Both the position numbers and the translations under genes were made by a program. A DNA stretch of 64,000 bases from Thalia democratica (taxonomy: Eukaryota), in the NCBI GenBank assembly GCA_965202585.1, contig OZ241833.1, positions 26,412,001 to 26,476,000 on the forward strand, read 5' to 3'. Shown here piece by piece: positions 17,151 through 64,000 of the stretch (the stretch's first letter is position 1; every line of letters starts with the position of its first letter). The notes below the pieces were generated by a model. That model saw nothing but the letters and a program-made list of their open reading frames with translations. It did no database searches and was not told where the DNA came from.

Positions 17151-17586
17151 TTATTTTATTTTTTTTCTGCGTGTAAACCGACTTCCTTTCTTCTTTTCAA
17201 CCGACTTGACAACTCACACCGCCACAACCATTCTCATGTCTTTAGCGGTGAAACGACCGAGCGCCAGGTAACCATCAAAAGTCTCGACGCACAGAGGCTT
17301 GCTCGGCTTGAGCCTGACCAGCGCGGTGTCTCCCTGCTTTATCCTTTTCGGGTTTTCTTCCACGACCACACCCGTGAGGCCGTCAATTTTCTGCAGCACG
17401 GGCTCGCACGCCACTTCGGCAGCGTGAACGTGGACCGTCGACGTGTACCCCGCTCTGACCTCTCCCGTATGGTGGAGAATGGTGACCAGGGCCGTGAAAA
17501 ATGCTGCTTCCTCCGACGACCATGCCGCGCTTGATGTCTTTCACGGACTCTTTCTTCACGCTGAAGCCTACGTCGTCGCCAGCATT
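17151..17586 (-). pseudogene. eef1a: eEF1A-like pseudogene, 3' fragment (end of domain II plus domain III)
   Basis: Reads AGDDVGFSVKKESVKDIKRGMVV, then after a frameshift near 17514 EEAAFFTALVTILHHTGEVRAGYT..ACEPVLQKIDGLTGVVVEENPKRIKQGDTALVRLKPSKPLCVETFDGYLALGRFTAKDMRMVVAV*VVKSVEKK. This is colinear with eEF1A [20 protein letters not shown]...[36 protein letters not shown]. The DSKNDPP segment is missing and TGA replaces a Gly; no 5' part was found. Confidence 0.85.
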
Positions 17587-20218: not shown

Positions 20219-20600
20219 AAGCACGGGTGACACTTTAGCACGGTGTGACACTTTAGCACGGTGTGACACTTTAGCACGGTGTGACACTTTAGCACGGGGT
20301 GACACTTTAGCACGGTGTGACACTTTAGCACGGTGTGACACTTTAGCACGGTGTGACACTTTAGCACGGTGTGACACTTTAGCACGGTGTGACACTTTAG
20401 CACGGTGTGGCACTTTAGCACGGGATGACACTTTAGCACGGCGTCACTTTAGCACGGAGTGTCACTTTAGCACGGGGTGACACTTTAGCACGGTGACACT
20501 TTAGCACGGGGTGACACTTTAGCACGGGATGACACTTTAGCACGGCGTCACTTTAGCACGGAGTAACACTTTCGCACGGCATCATTTTAGCATGGAATGA
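20219..20600. repeat. Left TIR tandem array, unit gcacggtgtgacacttta (18 bp) with 16-bp variants
   Basis: About 20 units visible; gives rise to the spurious VLKCHT and HRAKVS ORFs. Confidence 0.95.
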
Positions 20601-23600: not shown

Positions 23601-24249
23601 ATGTATATATTTGTAAATTTCGTTTGTGTTCGTTTTTATAATAAAATTTAGTGCTATGCATAAATTTTTTATTATTATTTTACATAAATAAAGTTATTTT
23701 AAACATGTCAGCTGAGCAAAGTAATTAAATAAAATGTAAGTAAAGTATTACTATATTATTAACAGAAGTAAAAAAGAATACAGTATAAGTACATTTATAT
23801 AATTAAGGATTTTTAAAACTAGTTACCATTTGATTTACCAACTTCTTGTTTTTCAGTACTTATTTTTGTTATTAAGTATAGTTTTTCTTAAAAAATACAG
23901 GCCACTAAAGATGTTTTCTAACGTTTTGCTACCTACAAATGATTTTTCTAAATATAGTTCGAAAAGACTGCCAAACTTTGTATTACAATTTACATCTTAC
24001 TTAAATAATATTTTTATTAAAAATAATTTTGGAAGACATACTCTTTCTTGAAATCACACTTCAAAGTGCCTAAATTGCATAATTAACAGCATGCTGGTTA
24101 TATAAATTAATTTTTAAACGTTTTATTAAATACAAACTTTACACGTATTTGATTAAGTTACTTAAAACTATCGATGGCGCTTAAGTGTCACTACGTGCTT
24201 AAGAATCATTTTGTGCAAAAGAATCAATCAGTGATAAAGTTACACTCCG

Positions 24250-24710
24250 TGTTAAAGTATCACCCCGTGCTAAAGTGAAACTGTGCTAAAGTGACACTCC
24301 GTGCTAAAGTGTCACACCGTGCTAAAGTGACACTCCGTGCTAAAGTGACGCCGTGCTAAAGTGTCACCGCGTGCTAAAGAGACGCCGTGCTAAAGTGTCA
24401 TCCCGTGCTAAAGTGACACTCCGTGCTAAAGTGACGCCGTGCTAAAGTGTCATCCCGTGCTAAAGTGACACTCCGTGCTAAAGTGACGCCGTGCTAAAGT
24501 GTCACTCCGTGCTAAAGTGCCACTCCGTGCTAAAGTGACGCCGTGCTAAAGTGTCACACCGTGCTAAAGTGTCACACCGTGCTAAAGTGTCACACCGTGC
24601 TAAAGTGTCACCCCGTGCTTAAGTGTCACACCGTGCTAAAGTGTCACCCCGTTCTAAAGTGTCACACCGTGCTAAAGTGTCACCCCGTGCTAAAGTGACG
24701 CTGTGCTTTT
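24250..24710. repeat. Right TIR tandem array, unit ccgtgctaaagtgtcaca (reverse complement of the left array)
   Basis: About 25 units of 16-18 bp, inverted relative to 20219-20600. Confidence 0.95.
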
Positions 24711-27700
24711 CTGACACCTACCCTAAAACTCTTTATTGAAAACTGTAACTCATTATTGAAAACAAAAACTCTTTGAAGTTTTCGAAGACAAGTTGCTGTA
24801 AAAGTAAATAAGTCTGTATCTAAAAAACAATAGTTTATTCTTGGACCTACACAAAAAATGCATTAATTTTTCAAAAGCGTGTCTTTTTTGTCGTACATTC
24901 AGTCTTATTTGTTATAACTAATACAGTTGTCGTTAATAAAACATCTAACAGCTGTTTAAAATATTAATGCCTTGAGTTATCTATTTGTTACGTGCTTATT
25001 TATGTATTTTTATTTTGCAAGTATATTTAAGTCAGTTTTTTCTTATGTACAGTTTACTAAAAGTTTTTTTTTTAGTATTTTTCACTTATAGTTGTAAGTG
25101 TAAGCAAAATACTGTTTTTCAACCATTACGTGTTTTGTTTTCAATAGTTTAAGAGGATTAATTTTAACCCAACGCTATCAAAACAAACCCAAACCACAAA
25201 ATTTTCTTCTACCTTCTTTTTCTCTTAGAATAATCTCTACTAATTCTGTAGAGGTACAGGAGTATTAATATGAACAAGGCTAAAACAATCATTTAATTCA
25301 AAAAAAAGTATTTGAACATAAAGTAACAAACACTGTTAATAATCAAAAAAAGAATACTGAATGATTTTTTTCAACCCCTATAGCTACTATTAAATGCATA
25401 TGGTTTTAAATGATTAAAAATTTCTTTCAAGTAGTTTTTTACCCTAACATATACTGCAGCATAATAGTTTTTTTATTAATTTTTTATGTACATGACCTTT
25501 TTATTTATGCACAATCAATATCTCAAATAAATTGAAGGTTAAAAAATAACACAGTGTTATATCGTAAACAGATAATTTCTTATTATAAAAAAATTTACAA
25601 TATAAAAAGTTTTGTGTAAAATGCAATTGTGAAGTTTTCTAAATAGTAGTTCTTTTATAAATAATAATACAATTCGTTTAGTTTTTTTTGCCAAGATACA
25701 AATAAAACTTTAAAGTAAAATATAAAGAACGTGTCCTGTCTGTTACACAAAAGAATGTTATTGTTTTATCGAAAATTTGATTTATAAAATATTGCATAAG
25801 CATAAATGAATTACCTTCAAATATGATGCTAACGACAAAAATTCAACTCAACTATATTTTTGTAAAATTTTGTGTTAATTAAGTTTTACTACCATTCAGC
25901 AAATAAATTACTGTAACTTAACTTTCCATTCAAGTAGTCTTATTAAAAAGGTACGTACTTTGAACACAGTCCGTGTTCAAGAGGAAGACTATTGTATATT
26001 CTATCTTGTTCGCAATCAAATAACGAATTAAAGATTGCCTTCAAAAACTTTCAACGTGGAATCACATATATACTAGCATTTCAATTTTTAAAAATATAAA
26101 TTGTTCAAGAAATGTGATAGCCTGCATCGTAATAAGGTTTTAAACATACGTAGCATGTTTTACTTTGTCATTAATACAAGTTGAATTATTTTGAAAGCAA
26201 TTACTCTTAATAAACTAGAACCTAGTAAAAAATTACTTTAAATGCATGTTACATTTAAACTAGTTTATTTTTATGGCGAATTATTTTAATTGTTTATTAT
26301 TGATTTAAAAGTAATCCGTAGTTGTAGCCATGTTTGTTAAAAGCGCTTATTAGCTATCAGAGTTTACATAGTGTTGGAGGTATACCACATCTTATACAGT
26401 TGATGAGACTTGATATTTTTTGTATTTGTAAAAACCCATTTGTTGTTTATCAAAGAAGATGTAAAACTATTACGTACGCTTCAGATAATTTTGCTAAAAT
26501 TTTAAGGTATCTACAATTTTTTAATAGCAAAGATAAAATTGTATTAGGTTCAATAAGATTGTTACTTTTGAGTGTTTTCAGGAATTAAATAGACCAACCA
26601 GCAAAATTATAAGCATTTTTAGTTTTGAGAAAAAAATATTGTATTAATCTAAACAAGGTCTAAAAAGCTTTTTTTTTACTCAAAACTTTCGTAACCTTGA
26701 AAAAAAGGAGATGCAGTCCGTAAAAGTATATTATTCGTAATATATAAACTTCGTTAACTTTTATTTATTGGATTTTTGTTGAAAAAGAAACGTTTAATGA
26801 TATATGCTTTTTGTTCAGTTTCGTACTTTTAAACCTTTTTTAGTTTACCTACTGGAAATCTGTTTATATTTATATACTTAACATACGTAACTAAAATCTA
26901 AATAATCAAATATATAAAAAAAAAACCAAGTTGTGAAAAAGTTAAATAATGAAGTAAAATTACAATCTAGAAATAATTATATACTTTTTTTATAATAAAC
27001 AAGTTAGTGTGGTAGCTGTACTTTTGAAGTTACTAAATCACTAAATATTGGAAAATTTAATTTAATATATTCGAATACGATAATTGAAAGTAATACGTAA
27101 TTTACAATTTGCCTCTAATTAAATGACAACAAGTAAAACAAAAGTCAAACAATTTTTAAAAGTATAAAATTGACTAAATCTAAACAACAAAAATTGTTGG
27201 TTTTAACGGGGAAATATTTTGAAAGATAGTAATTTTTTAATAGAGCAATTCATTAAAAACAATCTTTTCATTAGTAAACCTATTTCAAAAAATTGTACCG
27301 ATTCATACGAGTTCAGATTTAACAACTTAGATCAAATTTAACTTGATAAAATGACTAAACAATAGATTGAACAAAATTAAGAACTTTAATCTAAATAACT
27401 TTGATCGTAATTCTAAAGATTTAAAATAATCAACATGTTTGAAAACTGGTCCACTGATGTTTGAAAAGTGATAGTAATTATTAAATAGATAAATATTAAA
27501 AAAAGTTTAAAAAATCTATTAAAATAGTTGCTATGCCTTTGAAAGTAAACATGCAAATACAAATGATAAAAGGCATAAATAGATTAAAAGTTAAAAAAAC
27601 TTAAATGTGACGCAAAAAAAAACTGAACACAAAAAGATTCGAGTTGTGTCGAACGGAAGGCACGATGAAAATGTTTTCTATGACGTCATAATAATATGTA

Positions 27701-28346
27701 ATAAGGGGCTGGTGTGACAAAGAAGCATTTCAAGGTGTAAGCGTTTTCTGGTAGCAAAATTTCAAACCTTCGCATGTAAACACACGAGCATGTAGAAACG
27801 GGATGGGCAAAAATTGGCTAATTATTCTACTTTCAATGATTCTTTTCGAGTTTTCTCTTTTCAGCGATTTTTTTTGTGTTGCGACCGTGCAACGCTATCA
27901 ACTTTTTTTTTGTTAGAAAATACGGTTACGTTGTGGCGTACCTTGGGCACTTTGATTGGCTGCTTGCTGGCAATCTTATCGCTATTTTCTTGCTAGCAAC
28001 AAAGTTAAAGCGCGGAGGCAACACTCTACCCTCTGGGGGGCGCGCGCACCGGTAAATGATAAAAATCGAAAGGCACAATGAAAAAGCTGCGCCCGAATTT
28101 GAAAAAAAAAACTACGTGTGTGGGGCGCGCCGACGCGAAAAGCCTGATAAATAAAATTCGTTTAATTTAAACCACCTTAGATACATACATAAACATTTAG
28201 AAACTGAAATTGAGGCAACAGTCGAACGCAAAGGTCACCGACGAAAAAATCAACGCGAAACAACGCTGCGACGAATCAGAAAAAAGAGGCCCCGAAAAAA
28301 GAAGGCTGAAAAGTTCCTGCGAAGAGTTGTTGTTCGGGAGGAACGT

Positions 28347-28537
28347 TCAGTTGTTGTTCGAAGGGAACGAGTCCATGGACATCTGGTTGTTGCCGTGGTG
28401 ACCGTGGTGGTGGTCCTGTTGCTGGGGAAAGTTCCCGATGAAGTTGCTGGAGTGGTCCATCATCATGTGGGGGGTGTGCTGCTGCTTGTTGGCGGACGGG
28501 AAGTGGTAGAACTTGCACTGGGGCCGGACGCACACAC
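28347..28537 (-). CDS. mbnl: mbnl terminal exon (second half of ZF6, His/Asn-rich tail, TGA)
   Basis: Acceptor catgacaacag at 28538, phase 1; [12 protein letters not shown]...SFPSNNN*. Confidence 0.85.
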
Positions 28538-31500
28538 CTGTTGTCATGGCAACGTGGTTACAAAGTAACAGTGGGCTAATTTTTTCATTTACTTAGGAAT
28601 CGTAGTCAATATTATTAGCAGTGCTTAGAGCTGGGAGTGGCATTTGTACTTTAAGTTAAAGTTGAGTTGTACAAATTTAGACGTTTTTGAGCTTTAAGTT
28701 CTGACAAATTTCAGATTAAAAATTGCATAATTAAAATGTGTGGAAAAATAAAATAAAATTAATGTCTATAGTTGAATTTTAAGTTTTAAACATCGTTACC
28801 TAAATATAATTTTACAACTGAACTAAATCTTAATATTAAGATTTTAGTGTCATTTACAGTGGACATTAACTAAAATAAGAAAGAAAAATCTTTTGTTTTT
28901 AGCTGCTGTTTATAAACCATTAATTTTTAGAATTTTTCAGTAAATAATTATTCTTTAGACTATTTTTGAAATATTTATCTAAAACTACTCTTAATTTTTA
29001 CTAAAGGATTCTACGAAGTAAGCACCATGTTGTTTTAAATTCAATTAGCTATGTCCATCGAAAAGAAAAATATTTCAAAACGATTTTTTACGTTTACCAA
29101 CTCAACATATTTTTTCTACAATATTAACTGCATAATCTTATTTTCCCATGAAATTTGTCAGACTCAAAACACAAAGAAGTATAAACCCGCATACTAATTG
29201 GTTTAACTGAACGCATATTCGAAATAAAAACTCAGCTCATGCTACTACTTCAAATATTGACTCATATTTCCAAGTAAAATATAGTTTACAATTTAATTTG
29301 GAAGACACTATTTAATTAATTTATTAGATCTAATGTTTGTGGGTATTTTTCAACATCCTTAAAACTTAACTTGATATTTTATAAATAAAGCTTCTATAGC
29401 ATATAACACAGTTGAGTTTCAGTGTTTGATTAACTTTAAAAAATATACGTCAGTAGTTTGTTAAAAACACCCTTTTTAAAGAATCTTTTCAGTGTGAAAA
29501 CACTTTAAAGCAAAATTATAACAAGTAGACTTAAATTTAAAAAATATATACTTTAAATTATTTTTGAACAAACCTTGTAGAGCGTCTCGGCAAACAGTGA
29601 CCTTGTCGTCTTTTACTTCAACATAATCTGTTTGTTGTTTATTTGTAATCAGAAGATTATTGCTAGAACTTGATTAAAAAATTAAATGCTTTAAATTAGA
29701 AGTTCACAAAATGTTTTACTAAAATAATTGCAAAAACTGTACAAAAAGTTGATTGGTTCAATTACCAAGTTTATTGCTTTCTAAGGTCATACAAAAGTAA
29801 AACCAGTAATTAAGTGTTACAACGAAAATGAGTTGTTTTAAAAAGTCTGATTCAAGCCCTTTTCAAGGTTAATTTGAATCAACTTTAGCCCGGCAAATCA
29901 TAGCAACAAGTATTAATTCAAAATGTGAAATGAAAATATTTGAGTTCGCTTTTTTAATGAATTGCAGCGATCAATCACAAACAAATTTAAAAATACTGAT
30001 TATTTTGGTTCGTTTACATTCATAATAACCATGAAAAAGAAATTATTGGAAATTATATGAAAATTAAGAAATACCAAAACTAATAAAAAGTTATAACTAA
30101 TACAACTTGACTATTCAGTAGAAGTAAAATGGTAGGCTGTTGTAATAGTGTTTTATAGGCATAAACAAACTAATAAAAGTTATTTCTTAAGCCAATTTTT
30201 TATTTTCTTGAAGTGCTGACTACACAAGATATATCAAACCAAATAAATAGAATATATTTTGAGGACTGGACAATAATTTTGCATACAGAAATACTATTTT
30301 TTTGTTAAAATTTAAGTAACTTTTGGCATTGATAGCAGTAAAAATAATTTAATCTTTCTCAATTTAATTTGGAGATTAAAAACTCAAATTACAGCTTTCT
30401 CATTGTAAACAAAACATGCAGATTTAGCCAAAACAGAAATAAACTAAAGTCTGAAAGTAGCCATAAAAAAGTTAAATCACAATAATTCGAATTAATTTAA
30501 ACACATTGAAGCAAAATTGAACAAAACTATTAACATAAACTACAAGTTTTAAGAAAAATTATTTCTACTAAAACTTTTAAACAGAAAGTAATTTGTTGAT
30601 TTGCAGCACCTGTTTATTATAATACTGACAATTAATGTGTGGACTACGCGGCCTAGGGTGTTTTAGTAATTACAGTATAAAATAACGCAACTTCCATAAA
30701 CTAAATTAGAAGTAAACAAAAAGGATTGGACAAAAATTTTTTTTGAATTACACAAATTAGCAAAATACATGTTTTTATAAAACACAACAAATATTTTACT
30801 GTATTAACAGCTTATGAGGTGTAAATGAAAAACTTGTTGTGTGTAATAGACACTAGTCTGATATTGCTATAAATAAAGTTAGACATTTTAATAATTTTAT
30901 ACTAAATAAAATTTACTGTAATAATGACTGCAGCAGGAAATTAATTGAACATAAAAAAAACAAATTTATAAACATTAGTAAAATACGTAAATTGAACAAA
31001 TTTGATAAATTAAACGCGTCAGCTTAATTAACTTCAAATGCAATTGCATAAAAAAACAACAGAAATTATCGGAATACCAGAATTAAAATATAAAACAGCA
31101 CAAAACAAAAAGTAAATTAAACTCATTCCAATTTTTAACCGAACAAACCAAAGAGGGCAACGGAAAATTGACAGAGAAACCAAAAATTAAAAAAAAAATC
31201 AATTATAAAAATTAAACTCGTTCCATTCCACAGCAGCAATTACCATCGAAACCAAACTAAGACAACGAAAATTGACAGAGAACCCAAAATTTAAAAAAAA
31301 TTCCGCCAACAATTGCCAAATCTGAACCGCGAACCTTTGTTGACGTGCACGAAGCGGCAGAACGGCCGCACGCACTTCCCGCTCTGGAAGTCCCGGCACA
31401 CGGTGAGTGAGGTGGGCGCGTGCCGGCCGTGGCTCGCCATGCCGAAGCTCGCCGCCACCTTCGTCGCCAGGTACTCGTCGCTGGTCAGCTGCAGCAAGTT

Positions 31501-34500
31501 GTTTGTGACGTCACAGTTGTTGTGAAAAAAAAAATTAAGAGGGAGCACGCACCCGACTTAAAAAAAACAAACGTTTTTCAAGGTCTTTGAAAGAATTTAA
31601 TGCTGACTTTTCAGTGAATGGAACAAACACCATTCATTTGATATTTAGGACTTTTTTTTAGTTTTCAATAAAAAAAGCTTTAGGAATGAAATTTGGTAAA
31701 AAATTGAAATCTTTTTTAAACTTTTTGACTAAGTATCTTAAATATATTTAGCTTGAACATTTTGCACAACTCAAATTAAGTACAGTAACCTCTCGCTTAT
31801 TTACGCACAGTGTGTCCACAGAATAAGTGCGTAAAGATATGAGAGATCGTAAAGATACGAGAGGTACCAAATATACTTAATATAATGACTGTTTTTTCAT
31901 ATTGCTTCTAGTTAAAAGCAGACTGGGGATTTTCCAACTTTTAACATTTTGTTTACTTAATTTATTAATATGTATGAAAAAAAAAAGAAAAAACTATACA
32001 CACAGTAATAAAAAGAATTTAAATTTATATAAAATAGTAGTACTTGTAGAAAAAATTTACTAATTTTAATAATAAGATTTTACCTTTATTAGTATGTGAT
32101 TTATTTAGAACTTAACATTTATATTCTATTCTACTTAGCAAATTCAATTTAAATTAAGCATTTGTTTACAATTAATAAACGGTTTGGTGTCTATATTAAA
32201 ATTTGTTTATATAGCCTTTTACAAAAATATGCATTTGTGGCTGTAATGGATTTCTTCTTTTGAACAAAAATATTTAAAATATAACAAACATGTTAATACT
32301 GAGGTATAACTTAATGTTTATCAATTAGTCAAGAAACATAAGTTTACAAATTTTGAAGATATAGAGAGGTGATTTATTATTTAAAAACATGTTTTAAATT
32401 AAAAATATACAATAAACCTAATTTTTGTAATATTAAAAAAAAAAAAAAATTTTACTTTTTGAATTTTGTAGAATTCTAAAATGCGTAACTAAACGAGAGT
32501 GCGTAACGTCACGAGTGCGTAAAGATGTGAGAGGTTACTGTACTATGCCATATCAATTTTATACCTTATTTAACTTCTTATTAATTTGTGGAAATATTTA
32601 TAATCAAAGTGAAATATAGAGTTATCAGATAAAGTATAAAATAAATCAAATAAAAGCTGAAATTTAACTTTTTTAGTAAAGATATTTCATGTAAATTAAA
32701 TTGGGCAACTAAAATTGATATAAACAAGCCTTTTTATATTGATCTTAAAATATTCGATCTAATATAGCACAATTTAACATATTAACTCTAGAATAACAAG
32801 TAAAACCAAGTTTTTATTAATTACTTTTACATAAAAGACATATTTGGTTGAACTAAATCAATATTCTTAGTCAAATTAATTATTAATAAAAAAAAAAGTG
32901 AGTAGATATAAAATAAGAGCAAGGATATGTGAACAAATATTAAGTTCAGATAGATATAAGATCTTTGTAATATTAAATTAAGTAGTTTGCTTTATACATG
33001 TTGAATAAATTTAATAACTTGTTAGAAAAAACAATAGCTATGTTATGTTCTGTTTGACTGAAGAATTTCTACATGGTTTATTCTTATAATTCTAAATACA
33101 TGATACAAACTTTTCATCTTAAAAAGATGTTTCTGTGTTTCTTTTTGTCAGCAATTACATACATATACTAGGGTTGCCACTCATTTTTTCAAATTTTTTT
33201 CCAGGTTTTCCAAATTTCTTCCAGGTTTTTAAAAGTACACATTTTTGGGTCTAATTTTAGTTTTAAGTTAATTTCTATTAAAGAAACTGTGTTAAATAGA
33301 ATAAAAGCATTGAAAAGATACTGTAAAGTTACTTTAGCGGTGTTTTGATGATGACAAAAAATCTTAAATATATGATAGATTTTTAGTCTCAAATCAAATT
33401 TTACAGCTGTAAATGTTAAAGTTATTAAAAATTCAAGGTTTTTCCATGTTTTTTGATCAAATTTCCAGGTTTTTCCAGTTTTTTTTTCAAAATTTCTCAA
33501 ATTCCAGGTTTTCCCAGGTAAAGTGGCAACCCTGATATACAGAAAGAACTTTAACAAAAAAACAACAAGATCAAAATTTCCTTGTAAAATGAAGTTATCA
33601 AAATACTATAATCATGTATATTATCTGCAGTTATTAAAAATAGAAGTTAATATAAATATAATCAAACCTATTTAAATAAACCAGAAGATCAAGACTTTCT
33701 AGCAATAGTTTGTAAACAACAAGTCAATTAATCATACAACTCGGCTACAAAATACATTACAAGACCGACAGTCTAAAGAAAGTATTTTTTTAATTTCAAC
33801 AGTGCCACAAGTATATACACAAGCAAAGCATGAAGCGGGCAAGCATTACAAGTGTTAGTGGTGCAAAAAATGTTAAAATATTATCAAACAGTTGCTACAA
33901 TCCGTCGAACATATATCGATAGAGGGGATATTTTGAAGCAGCCTGTAGCAAAACTCTTAGATTATAAAGTAGATTTTTTGTTTACTTTTAAACTTTTGTA
34001 AACGTTAAGAATAAAAACTGCAAATTAGCAGGTCAAAGTAAACTTAAAAATTATCCGACAAAAAACATTTATATTTTTCCTTGTTTTTTTGTCAAATCTT
34101 ACCTGGTGGCTTCTGCCTTGCTGCGGCTGCTGCGATTGGTCGAACAATGTGGCGGCAATCGCTGATTGGTTCGCTGCCGTCTGCCCGTTCGCCACCTGAC
34201 TTGCGACCACCTGATGGGGTTGCTGAGCCGATTGTGACGTCATTGGGTACTGGAGCTGCATGATGGTCGGCAGCGCTGTGTGACGACACATGGCGTCAGT
34301 GTGACGTAATAATACAACTACTAGATTTTGTGATGAAAGCAAAAATAACATGACGTGCATTTAATTTGGTTTATATCTTTTCTTAATTATTCGCTCTAAA
34401 CACAAACTTTCAAAACTGGCATTACTTTTTGCTTTGAATAAAAAAGTAAAAATTTGTTTCAGGCAAAATTAATGAGAAGCTTTTTCGTAGTTTGGCACAA

Positions 34501-37500
34501 AAACAGAAGCAAAATGAAGCATGATGTGAATTTTGAACGTAAAAAACTTAGCTTTTTTATTTTCATTTAATGCAAAAAAACAAAATTTGACTTGAAATTT
34601 TAGCAGAAAAGCTTTAAAAGGGTACTCGCACCCTTCAAAAGAGATTAGTAAGTTGCAGACAAAAATCACATCCGAAGGGAAAATAAACAATAAACTAAAA
34701 AGAACTAATCGGAGCTGCAAATTACCTGAAGTCTGCGGCTGGTAGAAAGCGGGCTGCTGGGAGAGCGCGTTGAAGGTGCTTCCCCCTCCGTACAGGGTGG
34801 ACAAACTGGTCGCCTGCTGGTTCGCGCCCAGCTGTCCGGACTGACCAGGGCTGATGAGGTTCATGCTGGACGTGTCCATCACCTGCCGTTTCAACGGGGG
34901 CTGCCCGTACCCGTTGCTAAGCTGCGAGGGGTTGAAAATTTGTTTACTGATAGAGTTTTTACATGTTTTAAAATTTAAATGAATTTTTGGTAAGTTATTT
35001 AAGAGATATTTTGCTGTATTAAATTTTTTCTATTACTTTAGTTCTGTTTAAAGCATATTTTTAAAACTTTGAATACAACAAGCAACTTTTCAATCATTGT
35101 TTTAAATCTTTTGTACAGTCAATAAACTTATTTATGTAGAGAACTTTTTGGAATGTAAAGAGTAAACATGTTTGCTTTAAGATACTTTTTCAACTATACT
35201 CGATTCAAATACACAAGTTTAGTAATAAAGTTTGTAACATATAAATAAACATATTTTATCGTATTTTTGCATTAAAAGCTAAATTTAAAAAGTTTATTTC
35301 AAACACAGTCTACTTTTCTTATTTTGTTGCATCAAACTAAAAATATCTTAATGCTTCTTTTTTATAACAATTTAAAAACCCCGAAATGCAAATTAAAATA
35401 AAAATATTTTACTAAAATTCAGTTGTACTTTATAAATTAAAAAGTCCTTGTTCAACGTAATTATTGATGTTTAAAGAATGATAAAACAGTCTTTCTTTTT
35501 AATTTAAAAAGTTTATTTTATATAGTATTTTTGGTTATTATTTTAAAGTAAGACATTAACACTATCAAAACTTAAGAAGTTATATCTATTAAAACTATTA
35601 TTCTAAATGACTTATTTTAAAACTTCAGACCATTAAAGTAACTTTAATTTCTAATCTAGTTTTCCCTACACCATTTTTTATCCATTATATAACTAATTAA
35701 AGTATAAATATGTATACATTTACAATATATATAGTTAAGACAAATCTACAAACTATTACTTGAAATATATTTAACTTAGTTTATAAGATTTCGTATTAAA
35801 GATTAAAAACATTCTCTTCAAAACATGTCTTTGTATTTATTTGTGTAGTTTTAGCTACACCTTATAACTGGTACACAGTTTAGTTAGAAAGTTATTTTAT
35901 TTAAAAATCCACTCATTAAAAAAAAATGGTATTTGAAATGTTTACTTGGTTTTTTCGTTACAACAGAAAATACTTAATCTCATGCTTAGCTAAAATTAAT
36001 TTAGTTTTTCAAAAATAATCAGTTTAAAAATTTTAAGAAGTTTCTTATCTAAAGTAGTAAAATTAAGCTTGAAGAAGACTTTTAAAGAACATATTATTTG
36101 CACTAGCCTACTTTAAACACTTTAACATTTGTAAAACAAAACAACTAAGAATATTTGAAGCAGCGGCAATTTTCTCCAGGCGCATTTTGATTTCTATCTC
36201 AAACCCAAAGCACACCAAAATTAATTAAAAATTTCGAGCAAACTCTAACAAAGATTTATAAACTGAACGTAGAAACAAAATTGCTACTGCGATCTATAAG
36301 CAATTAAAGCTGGCTTGTATAAAAAGTACATTTATATTTATGTATTTACACATGATAACTACTACAGCAAATTAATTCAAGCAATAATTTTTATTACCAC
36401 GTTGTCCATAGCAACCATTGTCCTCTTTTGAGCGGCCTGTTGTCATGGTGAAGCGCCAAACAGCCAATCAGCATCAAGACAGCAGCATTGCAACAGCCAA
36501 TGAGAGCACAGCAGAAAAGGTGGAACCAAAAAATAATAAATTAAAAGAGATCAGTGGAAGTTGAAAAAACGGAACATTAAAACTGTCAATTGTTTTCAGG
36601 GGCTGAACAAATTGGACACTGGTAGGTCCTTATTTGTCTTTACAAGACAAACAGAAGAGTTATTTGATACGTAAAATTGTTCTACGTACAACTTTATATA
36701 GATTATGGGGTATATTTAGAATGTTTTGAGGAGTAAAAAGTTGAATAGAAACTTTATTAAGTTTTAAAACCTTTTTAAATTTTAAAGTGTTTAGCCCCTA
36801 AAAAGTTGACTAAAGCAGCTTTTTTTATGAAAATATTTATTAATTAATTAAAGTAACTATCAATAAATTATCTGAATATAAATATATTGAAACAGTCTAA
36901 ACTGTGTAAGTCGTAAAATTTATTTGATTTTAATATTAAATCGCTTTAAAGATTTCTCATTAAAACAGTTACATGTAAATAATCCTAGTATATCCACAGT
37001 AAAGTTTTTTAATTAACAAAGTACTAGTTCCAAAATTAAGCATTTTTATAATTGGCATTTGGGTGTATGTGAAAAAAGGAATTTTATTAATTGTTATATT
37101 TTTCTTTTCCAAAAACGTTTTGTGTCGTCTTAATTCATGATTGAAAGAACAACTAAATTAAGTAGACAATATGAGAACAAATTAGACGGTGAAAGAAATT
37201 TTTTATAGCTTTGGTAAAGGAAATCTTAAAATGGAAGTCTCTTTTAGGTTTCATGGATAATTTTTTACTAAAAACAAAGGGTAAAAATGGGAAAGAGTAC
37301 ATGCTTTTCTTCATGCTTAAGTTTGGATGATAAGCTATTACAAAAGTACTCTTACAACTGAAATTTTAATTAAATCAAAATAAATTAAAACGTTGCAAAT
37401 TAAAGTGAAGCCGCTTCTAATAGTCTACTAAACATTTTGGGTAAGATTGTGAAAGCGTTTTATGAAAAATGACATTCTTGTTAATAAACATGCATTCCTA

Positions 37501-40500
37501 AAAATTTTAATTTACGCGTTTTGTACAGAATTATAGTGCACTAGCTAAGCAAAAAGGTTGTGTAAAATTTATTTATCTCAAACAAATTATAAAATTAAGT
37601 TCTGATAACACAGAAAGTGTTTTTAAGAAATTGAGTTTTATTTATAAACAATAATAAATAAGGCTTATTTAAAACAATTTTTTTAAACAAAAAAAAAAAT
37701 TCTAGTAAAAGCAACCGAAATACGTTAAAAAAAAACGTTTTAAATTGTGAGATATAGCAACTTACTGTTGCTTGATTGTTATACATAAAAAATAAAAGCT
37801 ATCATTCCTTAACTCTTGTTGTCAAAGATATAAACTTTGTGGAAATTTTAAATGTCCAAGAAATATTTAACACAACATTGCTTAACCTAACTATAAATAG
37901 CATTAAAAGTAAAAGTATACTTGGACGTTAGTTATCTAAAACAAAAGATTTATATTTCATTTATTAAAATTTATTTTTACTTGATAGCACCGTATGGATC
38001 GTTTACTTAAAGTTGTATTCAATTTTCCTACTACGTGACTGGGTGGGTAGCAAAGAGGGTGTTTCTAATATGGGAAGATCCCCAGGATTGAAACTTACCA
38101 TGATGGGTTGCGGGGACTGAAGCTGAAGGGTGTGTTGCTGTTGCGGCTGAATCTGGGTGAAAATGGACGTTGCCATGGTAGCGGAGGGCTGCTGTTGCTG
38201 GGACGCCGCAGTCGAGGCCCGCATCTTTTGCTGAATAATTATTCGAAATTACGTTGCCACACACGATTCTATTTTTGGTGATTAAAAAAAAAATGCACAG
38301 CAAAAATTAATGCAAGCTTTAAAATATTAATTTTACTTTTGCCTGCCTACGCAGTTTAACTGAACCGTAATTTTTAACATTCTATGTCAAGCACGCACAG
38401 CAGCTTTTCCAAAGCAAGTGTTCATAGCATTTTGGTTGAAAAAAACTCTGTTTTTATTTGTAAAAAATAAAAAAAAGCACAAAATGTAAGCAAAGCGTTC
38501 TTAAAGCCTTAAGACACTTAAAATCGCCAAAACTCCACCAAAAAAAAAAAACAACGGAGCCTGGTGTGCGAACAAAAAAAAAACAAAACACGGTCGCCGT
38601 GGAAACGCTGCTGTGTGGGCGGCGAAAAATCCCCTGAAAAGGGAAAAGTGAACCTGGAGGTGGGCGGGGGGATGGAAGTACTTGCAGGCGTCCCTGGAGC
38701 ACCTGCCCTTGACGAAGTCCATGCAGACGGTGACGCAGTTGTCGTTGGGGTCGACGGAGGTTTTGTCGGGCGGGTGGCCGTACCTGCAGTCGTGCTCGCC
38801 CCGGCTGCAGTTCCCGCGCAAATAGTCCCTGCACACCTGAGAGGTCACACGTGGTTGGTTAAACGAAAATGGTCACTTTCGGTTTTGTAAACGGCGTAAA
38901 GATTTACATCAAACGCGTGTTGAAGGGAGCGACGGAACAATCACAACGACAAGCTCAGTGATCCCAGGTTGAAAGTAAAAAAGTGCAGCTAACTTGGGAA
39001 CATTGTGTGTAACATGGGTTTTAACGTTGTTAAGTAATATTATTTGGTTGTTTAAAGCTGTGCAAAAGATCAAAGGGTGTTGTTTAACCCCATTAAGGGG
39101 TTAAAGGTATATGAAAAAAATTGCTTGTATATACTTTTTTGTTAGATCTAATTGAGCAGGTTTACTTCTTGGGTTAAACTAACTTAACCCATAAAAGATC
39201 TACAAATACTGTCTTTTGCTATTTCAATTTAACGAGGTTTCAAAAAAACTTCAGCAGACTACAAGACTGAGACCACTGATAAAAGAAACAAAAACCTAGA
39301 CAATATTGATAAGTTTTATTGAAAAGTTTTACAAATATAACAGTTAAAATCCTAAATGCACTTCAAAACAACTTGAATCAAAAACAATTTTTCCTCAATA
39401 AAGATAATTTGTAGTATTTAAGAACATTGTTTATATTATAATATTTAATAAACTAATAAAAATGGAATTCAAAAGTATTTCTTAAACAAAAAAAAAACAC
39501 AAAATAAAGTTTGAGAAAAAAAAAATCGAGTCTACAACATCTGCTTGCTCACATGAAGGTACATTTGAAGTGGAGAAAAATTAATAATTCATCATCAGCA
39601 GATACATAAACTTCTTGTGAGGCTTCTTCAACAACAAACACACATATCACGAACATTAATCATTCAAAAGAGAGACTGCACAACGTTGCTCGCAGCGGCG
39701 TTTTATTGTTTTCAATTAATTTTAAAAAATACCATGTTTTCAATTATGTTGTCGTGTGTGACGTAATAAAAAATTTTTTAGAAAGACCTATGTGTAAACA
39801 ACATACAAAATTTAACTTCCTACTTAAGTAATTTTGAAAAGCAAACGGTTGTTTATTGTTTTAGTAATTTTACCTGCCTTATAGTTCGAAGAGCTTAAAG
39901 TGAATTTTATAAAAATATGAAGAATTTGCTTTCAATATATGGTTTATAAATAGATATCTTTGTACAGTTGTAAAAAAATACCATAAATTAATGCAGACTA
40001 ATACAAAAAAAAATTTGAATAAAACTACCTAGAAATACCATGGCAATAAATCAAAACTGACAGGGAGCAGTATAAAGTTTTGTATGGCTCGGATTTAAAA
40101 TAGCCTTTTAAAGCAAAACAAAACCGCGCAACACAATACGAGTATAAATATTGAGATCAAGTTTTAATACTGCTCTTGATAGGGAGCTGATATTTATAAA
40201 TGCGGCTGATATCGTCACGGTTCAGTTACCTTGCATAGGCAGGCAATTTTCACGCCCGGCTGAACGTGAAAATAAGCAAAGTTCAAACGCCCAAAAAGCT
40301 GCCTTTCTCTTGGTTTTGAATGCAAACAAAAAACAACTTTTTGAAAAATGATTAAAAGCTGATAGTAAAACAAGCGCAAAGCAAAGCAAGTTTTTGCGGC
40401 AAAATGTGTTTTGTCTGTTTGTGCTCGATGTGAATGATGATATCTACTTTTTACTTCGCTAATGCAATACAAGGGATTCGGCGTCTGGGGCAATTAGGCG

Positions 40501-43500
40501 GTACTTTCCCCTCATTATCCGGTGATCTTCCTCGATCACTTTGCTTCTGTTCTCAGACGAACATCGAGCCGCATAAAACATGATAATTACCCTTCCGAGT
40601 GATCAATCAATTACAATTAGAAGATTCCAAAAGCGAAAAACGTGTGAAAAATGTTAGTCAAACAAGCGTATGTGTGTGTGTGTAATGTACATAAAGCAAG
40701 CACCACTCTTTAAAACAAACAAAACTCGTTAACAAGTACCAAAAATTTGTAGGAAAAAAAAACTAAAGCAATTATTGGAAAGCAAAATTTCAAAAGCCGT
40801 TAAAAGTCAAAAATTAAAAGGCCGAAGAGGCACAAACCAAAAACCGAATTAAAGTTAAAAATTAAACTGCTGTAATTTTCAGCCATTGAAAAAACGACCC
40901 GAAACCATTATCGTGTGAAAATCACAGCAAAACTGCGACTTTTCTTCAAACCAACCTCGAGCCGATCGTTTCTTCCCTGTTGCTGCTGCTGCTGAGTGAC
41001 TTGCGCTGCCGCCGCCTGCTGGGTCGGCAGCATCATCTGCGGCTGCAGGTGCGTCAACAGTTGCGGCTGCTGCTGCCCCAAGTGGTACAGGGGAATAACC
41101 TGGGGTTGCGCCATGAAACCTGCAAAAAATTTTTTTTTGAAAGTTAAGTAATTTTTTGGCTCTAAATCGCTAGTGTTCGTGTTTTGGCGTTGAAAGGTTT
41201 ATTTTCGCTCAAATTTTTTCACTCCCCTTTTTTATGCTTAATGAGAATTGGCAAAAGTTTTTGTATTTTTAATAAAAAATAAAAGTGGCTGATTTACTTT
41301 GCATACATTTTTATGCCTTAATTGAAGTTTACCTATGAAGTTCAAATTTTATTTCATTACTTGTCTTTGATGCTAAAGTTTGGAGTCAAGTTAAATGCTA
41401 ATTTGTAAAATAATTATCTTTATTTGTTTTCGTTATTATAACTTTAAACTTTTCAAACTAAACACTTTGATTCTTTTGAAATGAATAATTTTTTTTTTTA
41501 CAAAACCAAAACTTTTTACCACCTTAATAACTGTTCATCAAGGTTACCCTTTTATCAATGTTTTTGCTATTCGAGCAATTGCTACTTTGAAAAGGTTTGA
41601 AAACAAAACAGAGAGCGTTGAAAAGCAAGCTGTAAGCTTCAGCTTGACTGACAATTAATCGGTAAGCAATTTACACGTAAGCCTCTTTATACAAATAAGC
41701 ACTAAAAGCAACTAGCAATAAATTAAAGCAGTAAATTAAGTTTTGTGCGCGTTTGAAAATAAGACTACATGTATGTATGTGGCTGGCTACTCAGTGCAAA
41801 CAGACGTTTTATGAGAGCGTAATTAAATCATCAGCTGCAATTTAGCCTTGATGCTATTTTTTTACAAGTAAACAATCGTGGTAATTTTTCAAATAATTAC
41901 ATCCAATAAAACACTGAAACATAGAGTAGCGAGCAATTTACTATTAAAAAAAAAGAAAAAGCGCATCTTTGGCACAACTGAATTTTCAATTATCTTCGAT
42001 TAGTGGACAAGTGATTTATTGCAGTAGAAAATGTAATTGTTTCAAGAAAAATAAAGATCTTTTATCGTTAGATGATTTATTCGACTAATAGCTTTGAAGT
42101 ATGTTAGCTAAAACTAGTCAATTACTTCTTAATTTGCTATTTTTTTCACTCAACCTTTACTATTGAGACAACCACCATCTTGGCGTTTAAATTTTCTTCA
42201 ACTATTACAACATCCAAAAAAGGACCCCTGAATATTTTTCGCAAAAAAAAAAAAGTCCAAACAGTTGTGCGCAAAGTTGACGCGCGTTTTCTCTGCGCAC
42301 AAAAAAGTACAAATTATTACGACAATTACCGGCGGCAGGATTGTACGCGCTGGCGGCATGCTGGAGCTGGTGGCTGCTTGCTATCAGCGGCTGGTATCCG
42401 GCGGGTAGCTGCTGGTACAATGCCGGGTTGGCGGAGAGGTGCTGCAGGCCTCCTATTGGTTGAGCGCTGGTGCCCGCCACTTGCTGATTGGTTGAAAAAA
42501 AAAAGAGAAATAAGTGCAAGCGGCATATATGAGGGGTGACTATAGATATGTATAAATTGCTTTTGAACAAAAAATATTTTTGCTAATTACGCCTGCTATG
42601 TTAGTTTTAATTGTTGTTTATAAGGGTTTTGCTAAAGTTTTGAACTGATTGTTTTACGTTAAGCAAAAACAAAAATTGTCAATTTAGAAATTTTAATTAA
42701 ATTAACTGTTATTTAAAAAAAATTATTGTACTAGTCTAATTGATATTTTAATTAATTTTAAAAAACATTTTTTTGAGGAAAAATATAAATTATTTTTAAA
42801 GTTAGATTTTTTTTACATTTTACCTTAAATGCATACATAATGAAAAATAAACGACTGCTGCAAACTAAACTTAATATTTTTATGAAAAAAAACATAAAAC
42901 TTAACTTAGTTTAAATTATTTTATGCTGGTATTGTTAAATTAATCAATAATTAAATAACTATAAATTGGTAAGCAAAAATTTTTCTGTGCAACTAAACTT
43001 TGAATGGTAAAAGCAACCTAGAAATAAGCTATAAAACGCCTTTTATGTATATATGTTTATTAAAACCCAGTTAAAGCCATTTCTCAACAAACGTTATTTT
43101 GATAAACACTAATAAGCAAGCTTTAAAATTTCTCTAAGACTTAATTGACAGCTTCAGCGATGTAACACCGTAATTACGACACTACATCAAAGCCACTTAA
43201 TAAACCAGTTTAACGAAAATAACAAAATTGTAAACTAAAACTAAATCCATTTTTAAATAATTCCAACAGTTAAACTAAATTGAGAAAAAAAAGCAAAATA
43301 GATATAAGCAATTTCTTCTTATTGTATACTTTATTTTAATGGGTATTTAGATAATTTATACACCATTAACCTTAATTAACAATTAGTACTGAAACGTTAA
43401 AAATCTAAAAGTTTCAGCTTAACAAGTTAAACAGTTTTATACCTATGAAAAATCGGACATTACAAAAAATAAAAAAACATGTTAAAACATCAAAACTCGA

Positions 43501-46500
43501 GTGAATTTACTTTTTAAATGCAGACAAGTATCAGCAGACAACAGTATATGCGCAATATATATATATATATATGTAGCTGCACACAAATATTTAGCTTTTC
43601 AGCAGCAAAACCGTTGCGCGCCACTCTCAATTCAAACGTACCTCGTAGCCGACCAGTCCCGGCTGCAGGATCTGCGTCGCGCCCGGCTGCACGATGTTGG
43701 CGGGCTGACCCGCGGTCTGCGGCATTAATTGCTGCAGCATGGCCCTGTTGTTGATGAGAGTCTGTCTTCCGGCGAACTCCAGCTGCTGCTTGATGACATT
43801 GGTCGGGTGCAAGTACTTGCAACTTTCTCGCTTGCACTTGCCCTGTTGGTCAGTGATAGAAACGTTAAGATTTTTTTGACAAATATTTGACGCGTGTTTG
43901 GAGTTTAATAAAATATGTAACGGTTAGATTGTAATATTTTTTAATTTAAATCTAGCTTAAGCAAAGTTTTTTTTCTGAGAACAAATAAGTTTAGTCAGAG
44001 TTTAAACAAGAAGTACAGTTTTGTTCGACTTTTTTTTTTTCTATAATGAGTTTTTCTTATTTGTATTGGGTAAAATTGTTCTCTAAGTTTGTACATTTAT
44101 TCGCTCTCAACTATTAGTCTACGGGTCTAAAGCTAGTTAAGAAAGCTAAAAATTTTTCACAACTTATTTTGCTCGACTTAAAGTTTACAGTTTAAATAAG
44201 ATTTTATAAAATAATGCAGCTTAAAAACTAGAAAGTTGTAACTTTGTTGCAACTAAATATATTTTATTTGTTTTTTTTTTTGATATGCAATAATAATATA
44301 AAGCATAAAAATTTAAATAATAACTTATCATATACAGAAAAAGCCAAGTTTTTGTTTTAGGCTTAAAAAGTGCGTACTAATTTAGATTAAACTTAAATTA
44401 TTAGTTATAAATATATCTTATTTCGTTTTGCAAGTACAATAAAACTAATACGATTTAGTTCTTAAAAGTCTAAATTCACTTATCTGAGAGAGTTTCACCT
44501 TAGTACCAACAACTTTTATGTATAATATTAACTTTTGTTATGTGTTTTTATTTTCTCAAAAGAATATTAAGCAGTTTAAGCGAACATTCTACTTATTGAA
44601 GCGTTCATTACGAGCCCTGAGGGTATTATTATCTTGTATTTTGTATGCAAGCAGTATTTATGACAAATGTATGTTAATAATTTCCTTGAAACTTTACCAA
44701 ACGTATTCAAATACTAAATGCTGTTTTGTTTCTTACAACATTACGAAAAAAAATTGTTAACATTGTCAAACGAACCCCTAAGTTTTTTATTTAAGTAATT
44801 TATTTTTATCATACAGTTAATAGAAGCCTAGGAACTCAATATGATTATTACGTCCATTGGGTATAGCTTACATGAAAAACTGAACTAAATAAAAATATAC
44901 AAATTCCATCAGAGCGAACGTTTTAGCTGAAAAAGCAAATCCCCAGCCAAAATCACATTACTTATTTATTTTGAGAAATTTATCAAAATTACGAATGCAC
45001 GCGAAATTAAAGTTATCTTGTGCGCCTGATGAATATTTGATACTCGGGAAAAGTTTTGCGAATTGAAACAAAGTATTAAGTACACAGAAAAGCTGAGCTT
45101 TTTAGCTGAGAGAGACCCGCACAGACTAAATAAACAGGGTTCGGTTGCTTTTAAAACGCTTCTGCGCACATTTTTGGCGGTCATCAAAAAGAAAAAGTGA
45201 TTATTGCAGAGCGCTTAAAAGGCTTGAAGCTGATCCGTTAAATTCAGAAGTGCCCGCGATGCGCTCGGAAAGAGGCTTGTGTGAAGCTGTTCGAGTATGC
45301 TTCAGAGTGGCGAAATATGAAAGTTTTCAGTCAGTTTCAATTCAGTCGACAAAGTCGGAGCTGATGTGCGCGAACAGTTTTATTTTTATTTTCAACGCGC
45401 AGCTGTACTTTGAGCGCTGACAGTCAAATTAGAGAGTCGAACATCTCAATGTAGATAAGAACTGAAATGGGTTACTTTTGCAGGTACTCGCAGTTAGACA
45501 GGCTCATAAATTTTTAACAAGCCAGTTTCGTCTGTGAAGTTTTTATTAAAAACGCAAAGGGAGATTATCTGTCATCTCGTAGTGTGTTGTTATATTTTTT
45601 TCTTATATAAATTCCCATAAGCGTCTTAATGATGACAACCTTCGCTAGCTTCTTTTACAGCTCGCTTTATGACGTCACATTAAAGCGAATTGTTAATGAA
45701 GCAAAGTGAAGCTTGTGCGCTTCCTACAAGGCTTATGAATCTTGTGTTGCTGTTTTGTTTGCTTTTCAGCATAACTAATAATAAACTCTCAAAATCAATA
45801 TCAAGCATTGTGATCAGTATTTTTTGAGATTTTTTTAAATGAGCTTATGAGTTAAAATTAAAACAACGAATAGATTGAGTATTTTTTATCGAAAATTACG
45901 TTTGTTAAATGTTAAAGAAAAAAAAATTAAAAAATATTAACTGCAACTAGTATCAATTATAATCAACTTACTTTAAACTTTTTTTGCAAAAAGTTTTTTG
46001 TTACACAATGCTGATGCTTTATTTGCAATAAAAATATTACAAATCTGTGTAAATTTTAATAGTTTGAAACAAAAATCTATTCTAAAAACTTATATAATGA
46101 ACAAAAACTTATTTGTCATTTACTTTTTTATTTCATTTTAACACTAAAAAAATTCAAAAAATATATAATACCAAGTTATACTTTTGCTAAGGTTTGAAGA
46201 AAATTGTATTACAATTTTGGGTCAGTAAACTTTAAAAAAGCAAAAACTTAATATCTAAATTAAAATGTTTTCTAAAGCTTACAGACTCGAATCAATATTT
46301 TCATATGATTAGTTACAAGACCAACCAACAGCTCTTTCTGTAAAAGCTATCTAGCTAACAATACTCCTTCTAACTGATATAGAACAAACTCAACAATAAC
46401 TTTTTCAACACCGCTTCAGAGATGCTTCAGCCTTGATGTTAAGCCTCACTCACACACACACATGCATGAAAACAATACAAGACTCGGTGTGCTGCAAGCG

Positions 46501-63260: not shown

Positions 63261-64000
63261 CTGGTGTTGGATTATATATTTAGTTTATTTTATAATGTTA
63301 TTAGCTAGTTAAAAATATCTATATATATGAATACTTTTATATAAGTAACATTTTATTTCTTTATAGTAAAGTTATTTAGGGTGATTCAAACTACTTGTTT
63401 TGACAATTATTAGGTTGTTTGATAGTTACTAACACATTTACTTTTGGTTCTAACCACAATACGATTTAAAACTGGCTTCATTAAAAAACTCACTTGATTT
63501 TTTTCTAAGAAGAATATTTTAATAAGTAGTCAGTCACACTTATTTGATAAATAGATCTGGTAACCGGAAATAAACCAAATTTTTAATTTGAAACTTATAA
63601 ATAGTTTAACTTTAACTTTTTCTCAAAATATGTAAAATGTTTTTATGACTGTTTTAAGGAAAATGTTTTGTTATATATAATACAAATGCTATTTTAAAAC
63701 AATGAAACTGAAGTAGAAATATGAAAATTTATTCAATGTATAAAACAACAAGCACAACAACTTACTGTTCATTTTATGATACCAGCTGTTTAGAAAGCGA
63801 GGTTTTCTTGTTTATATTTAAAAAGCGAGAGTTAATAGTAGCCTTCAAATCGAGTGTGTATTTGTTAGTAATGGGCAAGATTTATGCTTAGCAGAGTGGA
63901 ACGGCGAAATCAGAAGTCCAACCGATAACTCATCAAAACGTTCCGCTTCCAAAAAGTACAAACTAAAAACTAAAGCTGTAAAACTGAAATCAGGTTAGAA

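Follow-up and report, generated by a model that had tools for sequence, protein, structure and literature searches.

The 64,000-nucleotide (nt) stretch of the Thalia democratica genome analysed here (GenBank assembly GCA_965202585.1, contig OZ241833.1, positions 26,412,001 to 26,476,000 of the forward strand), hereafter the window, carries what is by its sequence a tunicate muscleblind (mbl/MBNL) gene, encoded on the minus strand between ~63.9 kb and 27.1 kb in window positions. Three exons at the 3' end of this gene, termed A, B and C, encode a third tandem pair of CCCH zinc fingers (ZF5 and ZF6) behind the two familiar pairs, ZF1/2 and ZF3/4. Taken together, the data presented below make it very probable that exons A to C are an ancestral module, named TZF3 here, that is made optional by splicing, with a six-finger protein and RNA binding by the third pair as its predicted outcomes. 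The exon anatomy, the orthology and the purifying selection were established directly, and the splice forms were seen in relatives. An earlier interpretation of this DNA, made from the letters alone (the sequence-only reading), had taken the six-finger protein for a new, trivalent MBNL; this was not borne out, as six-finger isoforms are annotated in the ascidians Ciona, Styela and Clavelina, and from sponge and corals to Drosophila and amphioxus. Judged by the same comparison, the window gene is an ordinary ortholog of isoforms already in RefSeq and not a new type of protein.

Exons of the muscleblind gene and its third finger pair

The window has a G+C content of ~28%, and its exons are G+C-rich. 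A motif scan located four other fingers upstream of exons A to C on the same strand, with ZF1 at ~62.0 kb, the second half of ZF2 at 43.8 kb, and ZF3/ZF4 at 38.7 kb. The first pair is preceded by an RD/KWL-LEV box (RDPEWLKVE|VCREF...) and is split within ZF2 by an 18-kb phase-0 intron; the second pair is preceded by DRLEV (...GRNDRLE|VCRDY...) and is encoded by one exon (38654-38836). These N-terminal motifs (RDPEWLKVE|, DRLE|VCRDY) match tunicate muscleblind proteins, and the P-x-IMQL motif of exon U, the exon that precedes exon A, matches the Ciona protein. In tblastn searches, proteins of Ciona, Styela and Clavelina matched all exons in order, and their breaks at VNK|DY and LQG| are the A/B and B/C borders of the window. 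A 3059-nt JGI metatranscriptome contig of a close relative (L001, which encodes protein P0179) was likewise collinear with the window, at 80-88% nt identity in exons, and mapped to a 5' untranslated region (UTR) at 63766-63938, ZF1, ZF2, ZF3/4, exon B, exon C and a 3' UTR reaching ~27089. Because L001 is collinear through both of them, the muscleblind gene truly ends, on its 3' side, in exons B and C. Furthermore, the collinear course of the ascidian proteins and of L001 supports the view that exons A to C belong to this gene, as the sequence-only reading had proposed. The exons are the following.

63068-63260, minus: first coding exon, which ends ...RDPEWLKVE (the LEV box ahead of ZF1)
61906-62025, minus: ZF1 with the initial half of ZF2; ends ...CYDALK, phase 0
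43642-43842, minus: second half of ZF2 and the conserved KQQLE..GRQ box (motif scan, L001)
38654-38836, minus: ZF3 and ZF4, the second pair, in a single exon (motif scan, L001)
34726-34922, minus: constitutive exon, which ends ...QPQTS-G in phase 1 (L001)
34103-34275, minus: exon U, preceding exon A; 173 nt, with phase 1 at its start and phase 0 at its end
31335-31488, minus: exon A, the ZF5 exon; 154 nt, borders cag|CTGACC...CAAAG|gttcgc, ends in phase 1; it encodes LTSDEY..., ZF5 (CX7CX4CX3H) at 31345-31398, and then the 3 initial residues of the linker
29574-29627, minus: exon B; 54 nt, borders acag|ATTATG...ACAAG|gtttgt
28347-28537, minus: coding part of the terminal exon C; acceptor acag|GTGTGT, TGA at 28347-28349
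27089-28346, minus: probable 3' UTR of the terminal exon (L001 alignment)

When joined, exons A, B and C comprise 399 nt (132 codons and a stop), and the product runs from TSLTV into ZF5 (C-x7-C-x4-C-x3-H), a 15-residue linker, and ZF6 with identical spacing. By tblastn, the ortholog of exon A in the Ciona isoform is the segment of residues 456-507; exon B, which follows exon A, codes for the rest of the linker and the start of ZF6, with the first ZF6 Cys at 29590-29592, and exon C supplies the remaining ZF6 (28503-28537) and a His/Gln/Asn-rich tail. Across the terminal exon, L001 aligns unbroken from 28539 to 27089 at 70% identity. The linker of the third pair (~15 residues) matches D-x-VEV..K/R-V-T/A-V-C, and this match, together with the CX7CX4CX3H spacing of both fingers, is that of the TZF3 class defined below. 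These observations agree with the three in-phase exons and the two CX7CX4CX3H fingers that had been read from the letters, since all borders are AG/GT and the frame can be read through to the stop. The proposed junction 34103>31488 is also in frame, with exon U ending in phase 0 at 34103 (...CACCAG|gtaaga).

Elsewhere in the gene, a KR-rich cassette exon at 36398-36515 (minus) is absent from L001, which joins 38099-38233 to 34726-34922; this fits an alternative cassette.

Splicing of the third pair and the probable use of exon A

Exons U and A together measure 327 nt (173 and 154 nt), so that skipping the two of them together keeps the frame. When exon U is joined directly to exon B, the sequence reads ATT ATG TTG AAG TAA, that is, IMLK and a stop, and the four-finger isoforms X3/X5 of Ciona end ...NGQSQIMLK, while Styela X4 ends ...NGQSQILLK. 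The 15 nt of exon B concerned (ATTATGTTGAARTAA) are identical in the window, in L001, and in two related genomic contigs (L002 and L004). Only 39 nt separate the IMLK stop from the last exon junction downstream of it; under the usual 50-nt rule of nonsense-mediated decay, a stop so close to the junction means that the message should escape decay. Skipping of both exons was observed in relatives: L001/P0179 splices the 34726-34922 exon straight to exon B (...QPQTS|DYVEV...), and P0178, from a second species, likewise skips U and A and consists of ZF1-4 and a lone ZF6. A third protein, P0180, is without exon A, and skips ZF3/4 as well. Further afield, Drosophila and Glossina have isoforms with only the second finger of the pair, and amphioxus has isoforms with only the first.

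These forms are consistent with a mechanism in which alternative splicing would decide whether the protein carries TZF3, in whole or in part, as an RNA-binding unit at its C-terminus. Inclusion of both U and A would give the six-finger protein; skipping of A alone would bring exon B into the other frame, ending at the IMLK stop, and would give a four-finger protein; and skipping of both U and A would keep the frame and give ZF1-4 with a lone ZF6. Proteins with four, five or six RNA-binding units would result from such a switch.

MBNL-type motifs (UGCUUGCCCGCUUCAUGCUUUGCUUG) are densely clustered at 33822-33850 (minus), ~250-280 nt downstream of exon U; the surrounding interval, 33814-33963, holds 7 YGCY motifs per 150 nt compared to an intronic mean of 1.4, and similar YGCY clusters occur at 38389-38538, 40364-40513, 41614-41763 and 57789-57938. 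The clusters may reflect muscleblind autoregulation; they were rejected as evidence that exon A in particular is autoregulated, because none of them flanks that exon.

Exon A was found, with both splice sites intact, in the related genomic contigs L002, L003 (NCBI GCA_024449705.1) and L004-L006 (Tara metagenomes), among which the flanks of the exon do not align. Pairwise dN/dS (the ratio of nonsynonymous to synonymous substitution rates) was 0.17-0.33, with dS near 1, indicating purifying selection on exon A. On balance, the six-finger form is likely to be made in T. democratica. The alternative that deserves most attention is that exon A has gone out of use in this lineage, and that only the four-finger and lone-ZF6 proteins are made: the transcripts of the closest relatives, represented by the three metatranscriptome-derived proteins (P0179 of L001, P0178 and P0180), all lack exon A, and a search of metagenome contigs for a transcript that contains it returned one genomic contig (L002) only. 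However, the frame of exon A is open, both of its splice sites are present and its phases are right, and dN/dS is ~0.2 in four related genomic contigs in which synonymous sites are near saturation and flanks are unalignable. In addition, a cDNA-derived Ciona entry (NP_001071913/BAE93303), which is identical to residues 119-592 of the six-finger isoform and runs from ZF3/4 through the third pair, contains exon A. Disuse of exon A is unlikely in the light of these data.

It is far less probable still that exons A to C form a separate, small CCCH gene downstream of muscleblind. An in-frame ATG does lie within exon A (FG-M-ASH), and a 2.6-kb intron separates exon U from exon A; however, the relative's transcript splices upstream muscleblind exons to B and C, the annotated proteins of three ascidians (one of them cDNA-backed) run from ZF3/4 into the third pair, and exon A, which opens at an AG acceptor, continues the phase in which exon U ends.

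Orthology, introns and spread of the third pair

Profiles of the first, second and third pairs (TZF1, TZF2 and TZF3) were built from eight animals, and the TZF3 class is defined by the third of these. The joined tail of the window scored 112 bits on the TZF3 profile, compared to 53 bits on the first- or second-pair profiles; because of this score and the conservation of exon A, the joined A-C peptide is not a chance open reading frame. A tree of 45 finger pairs from 15 species, which is unrooted, built on an alignment of 62 columns and does not resolve the deeper order, recovered every third pair in one group (97/93) and every first pair in a second (97/95), and placed the third pair of the window with the tunicate third pairs (99/99). 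Both the profile scores and the tree support a genuine third tandem pair of MBNL type, as had been claimed. The old duplication that had been suggested also stands: third pairs from sponge to tunicates form one group, and because they do, the duplication predates the split of the sponge from the other sampled animals.

The sequence-only reading had further held that the pair was appended beyond the ancestral end of the protein. This part fell, since muscleblind isoforms of sponge, corals, protostomes and deuterostomes alike carry this pair, and third pairs form a single tree group. The same finding leaves almost nothing of the idea that a lineage-specific third pair was added to an ancestral four-finger protein to give a new trivalent MBNL, even though the literature found mentions one or two pairs only. 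On the weak resemblance to the C-terminus of vertebrate MBNL2 that had also been suggested, a literature search gave no match.

As for an origin of TZF3 from TZF1 or from TZF2, the tree is unrooted and has 62 columns, the cross-scores are similar and PDB scores favour ZF3/4 only slightly; the solved structures closest in sequence to Ciona TZF3 were human MBNL1 ZF3/4 (3D2Q, E 7e-15) and ZF1/2 (3D2N, E 2e-12). Comparison with the Pfam CCCH families zf-CCCH_10 (PF22628) and zf-CCCH (PF00642), at the curated cut-off of 27 bits, gave 24.4 bits for exon A alone (a single finger, under the cut-off), 56.8 bits in two stretches for Ciona TZF3, and 192 bits in five stretches for the whole protein of the relative. 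TZF3 is predicted to bind GC-containing RNA motifs, as MBNL1 ZF1/2 and ZF3/4 do.

The intron positions of the third pair had been said to differ from those of the first, and this holds for one of the two. The first pair lacks any equivalent of the linker intron (VNK^DY). The ZF6 intron, in phase 1 after the first base of the Gly codon (C-R-D-A-L-Q-G^V-C), lies 1 nt away from the position equivalent to that of the ZF2 intron, which is in phase 0 between K and G of C-Y-D-A-L-K^G-K-C and is conserved from insects to vertebrates (Irion 2012, PMC3315501). The two introns may have a shared origin, or may have been gained in parallel at an AG|G site. The linker intron ahead of D-x-VEV was directly seen in the window and in the genomic contigs L002 and L004. 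Its presence in Drosophila, Glossina and amphioxus is inferred because isoforms break at that position of the linker: those of Drosophila and Glossina that have only the second finger break at ...VSY|DKVEV..., and those of amphioxus that have only the first break at ...VHLVE|GEAT.... Furthermore, an MBNL1 model of the hemichordate Saccoglossus kowalevskii (P0283) contains the 54-nt exon-B unit twice in tandem (DYVEVIDGKVTLCRYAAQ, then a second copy), and this doubled exon B is probably a pair of mutually exclusive exons fused by the gene predictor. The doubling suggests that both TZF3 introns are present in hemichordates too.

The spread of the third pair was surveyed with phmmer, in which exon A was the query against 1.84 billion proteins (E <= 0.001) and the best 150 of 399 matches were examined, and by further searches with exon A alone and with Ciona, fly and hemichordate orthologs as queries. 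Many of the best 150 of the 399 phmmer matches showed six matched stretches, and 31 of these 150 had exactly six CCCH motifs, mostly as three pairs. Annotated proteins with TZF3 were found in ascidians (Ciona intestinalis "zinc finger protein" X1/X2, Styela clava MBNL1 X1-X3, and Clavelina lepadiformis), in the hemichordates Glandiceps, Ptychodera and Saccoglossus, in amphioxus (several Branchiostoma species), and in echinoderms, with all five classes represented. Among insects they were found in many Drosophila species, Glossina, mosquitoes, bee, damselfly and Lepidoptera, and among other animals in tick, barnacle, shrimp, the nematode Trichuris, snails, oyster, corals and the sponge Sycon. 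No vertebrate TZF3 was present among the matches of a word-seeded search and the best 150 of 399 phmmer matches, a search that is not exhaustive. By these sequence comparisons TZF3 is apparently an ancestral module of animal muscleblind, and its lack in vertebrates is more economically read as loss.

Three MBNL-like pairs each were also seen in P0003/P0167, filed under the charophyte alga Closterium sp. NIES-68, and in the unnamed proteins P0013 and P0042; the last pair of these proteins scored best as TZF3 (84 compared to 61 bits). They represent either animal contamination of that assembly or an MBNL-like family outside animals.

Several points, in addition to the relatives' transcripts that lack exon A, weigh against an ancestral third pair that is optional by splicing and part of a six-finger protein. 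The transcripts come from relatives only, which leaves the six-finger form of T. democratica itself a prediction; most six-finger entries in other species are automatic RefSeq models; and the cDNA-derived entry of Ciona spans ZF3/4 and TZF3 without ZF1/2. Moreover, no test of RNA binding by TZF3 was found in the literature searched, and the absence of the pair from vertebrates rests on the word-seeded search and the best 150 of 399 phmmer matches only. A broader proposal is put forward tentatively, with somewhat less than even confidence: that the ancestor shared by the sampled animals, the sponge included, already had TZF3, which was apparently lost in vertebrates; that the splicing of TZF3, as a whole pair, a single finger or none, is conserved, with a linker intron common to flies, amphioxus and tunicates and a dual-frame exon that gives the IMLK end; and that it has perhaps never been formally described.

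Neighbouring features, earlier literature and known systems

An 18-nt tandem repeat forms two arrays downstream of the muscleblind gene, at 20220-20579 (~20 copies) and 24179-24697 (~30 copies); the arrays lie in opposite orientation ~3.6 kb apart, and could be the ends of a foldback-type element. A G+C-rich open stretch at 17217-17540 (minus) gave a match to PF22594, the C-terminal domain of eEF1A-like GTPases (E 8.5e-22), and is either an exon of a neighbouring gene (of eEF1A, HBS1 or eRF3 type) or a processed fragment. At 1561-2622 (plus), an open frame of 354 codons with BACK and Kelch motifs represents the C-terminal part of a KLHL-type gene.

A literature search for six-finger or third-pair muscleblind found no description of a third pair in any paper; the 2025 and 2026 reviews searched make no mention of it, and older papers give one or two pairs. 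The sole lead was the Drosophila isoform "MblF", whose second pair is only 32% identical to the vertebrate second pair (Irion 2012, PMC3315501); matched by description only, this divergent second pair is probably TZF3. In Ciona, "zinc-finger X1" has been used as CiMBL, and the number of fingers was noted to vary among homologs (Oddo et al. 2016). If the CiMBL construct is the present isoform X1, that study would already have assayed a six-finger protein, without remarking on it. The sequence-only reading had itself named prior knowledge of six-finger MBNLs in this lineage as the fact that would undo its novelty; in the databases such proteins are common, and in print no paper describing a six-finger MBNL was found.

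Altogether, the window provides one more instance of TZF3 and not its discovery, and the consequence for the window itself is small. TZF3 and its conserved splicing seem to be under-described in print: an optional third pair, with a putative role in RNA binding, is found in most invertebrate genes and in the two non-vertebrate chordate lineages, and work on myotonic dystrophy treats the MBNL family as having one or two finger pairs.

The closest known systems are the muscleblind genes of ascidians. Ciona X1/X2 (XP_018671400, XP_009862110), Styela MBNL1 X1-X3 and Clavelina LOC143450768 represent the same gene, with three pairs in the same order and with exon breaks at VNK|DY and LQG| like those of the window, and TZF3 of the window is 81% identical to that of Ciona. 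The ascidian four-finger isoforms (IMLK/ILLK) arise as those of the window would, by skipping of the ZF5 exon. The window differs in the spacing of ZF1 (CX7CX5CX3H, compared to CX6 in ascidians), in linkers richer in Gln and in a different C-terminal tail; its six-finger form is predicted from the genomic sequence.

Human MBNL1 offers a structural comparison, as ZF3/4 (3D2Q, 3D2S) and ZF1/2 (3D2N) align end to end with Ciona TZF3, through both fingers and the linker. Ciona TZF3 shares with MBNL1 the Cys/His ligands, an Arg that follows the first Cys in the first finger, and an aromatic residue 2 positions before each His. However, the loop of the first finger is short in TZF3 (CX4, compared to CX6 in MBNL1 ZF1 and ZF3), the linker has 15 residues compared to 14 and 16 in the MBNL1 pairs, and TZF3 forms a tree group of its own. 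The long muscleblind isoforms of Drosophila (RefSeq models of D. simulans, D. virilis, D. hydei and others) have the same class of TZF3 with the same linker intron, and contain either the whole pair or its second finger only; many fly isoforms join TZF1 straight to TZF3, without TZF2.

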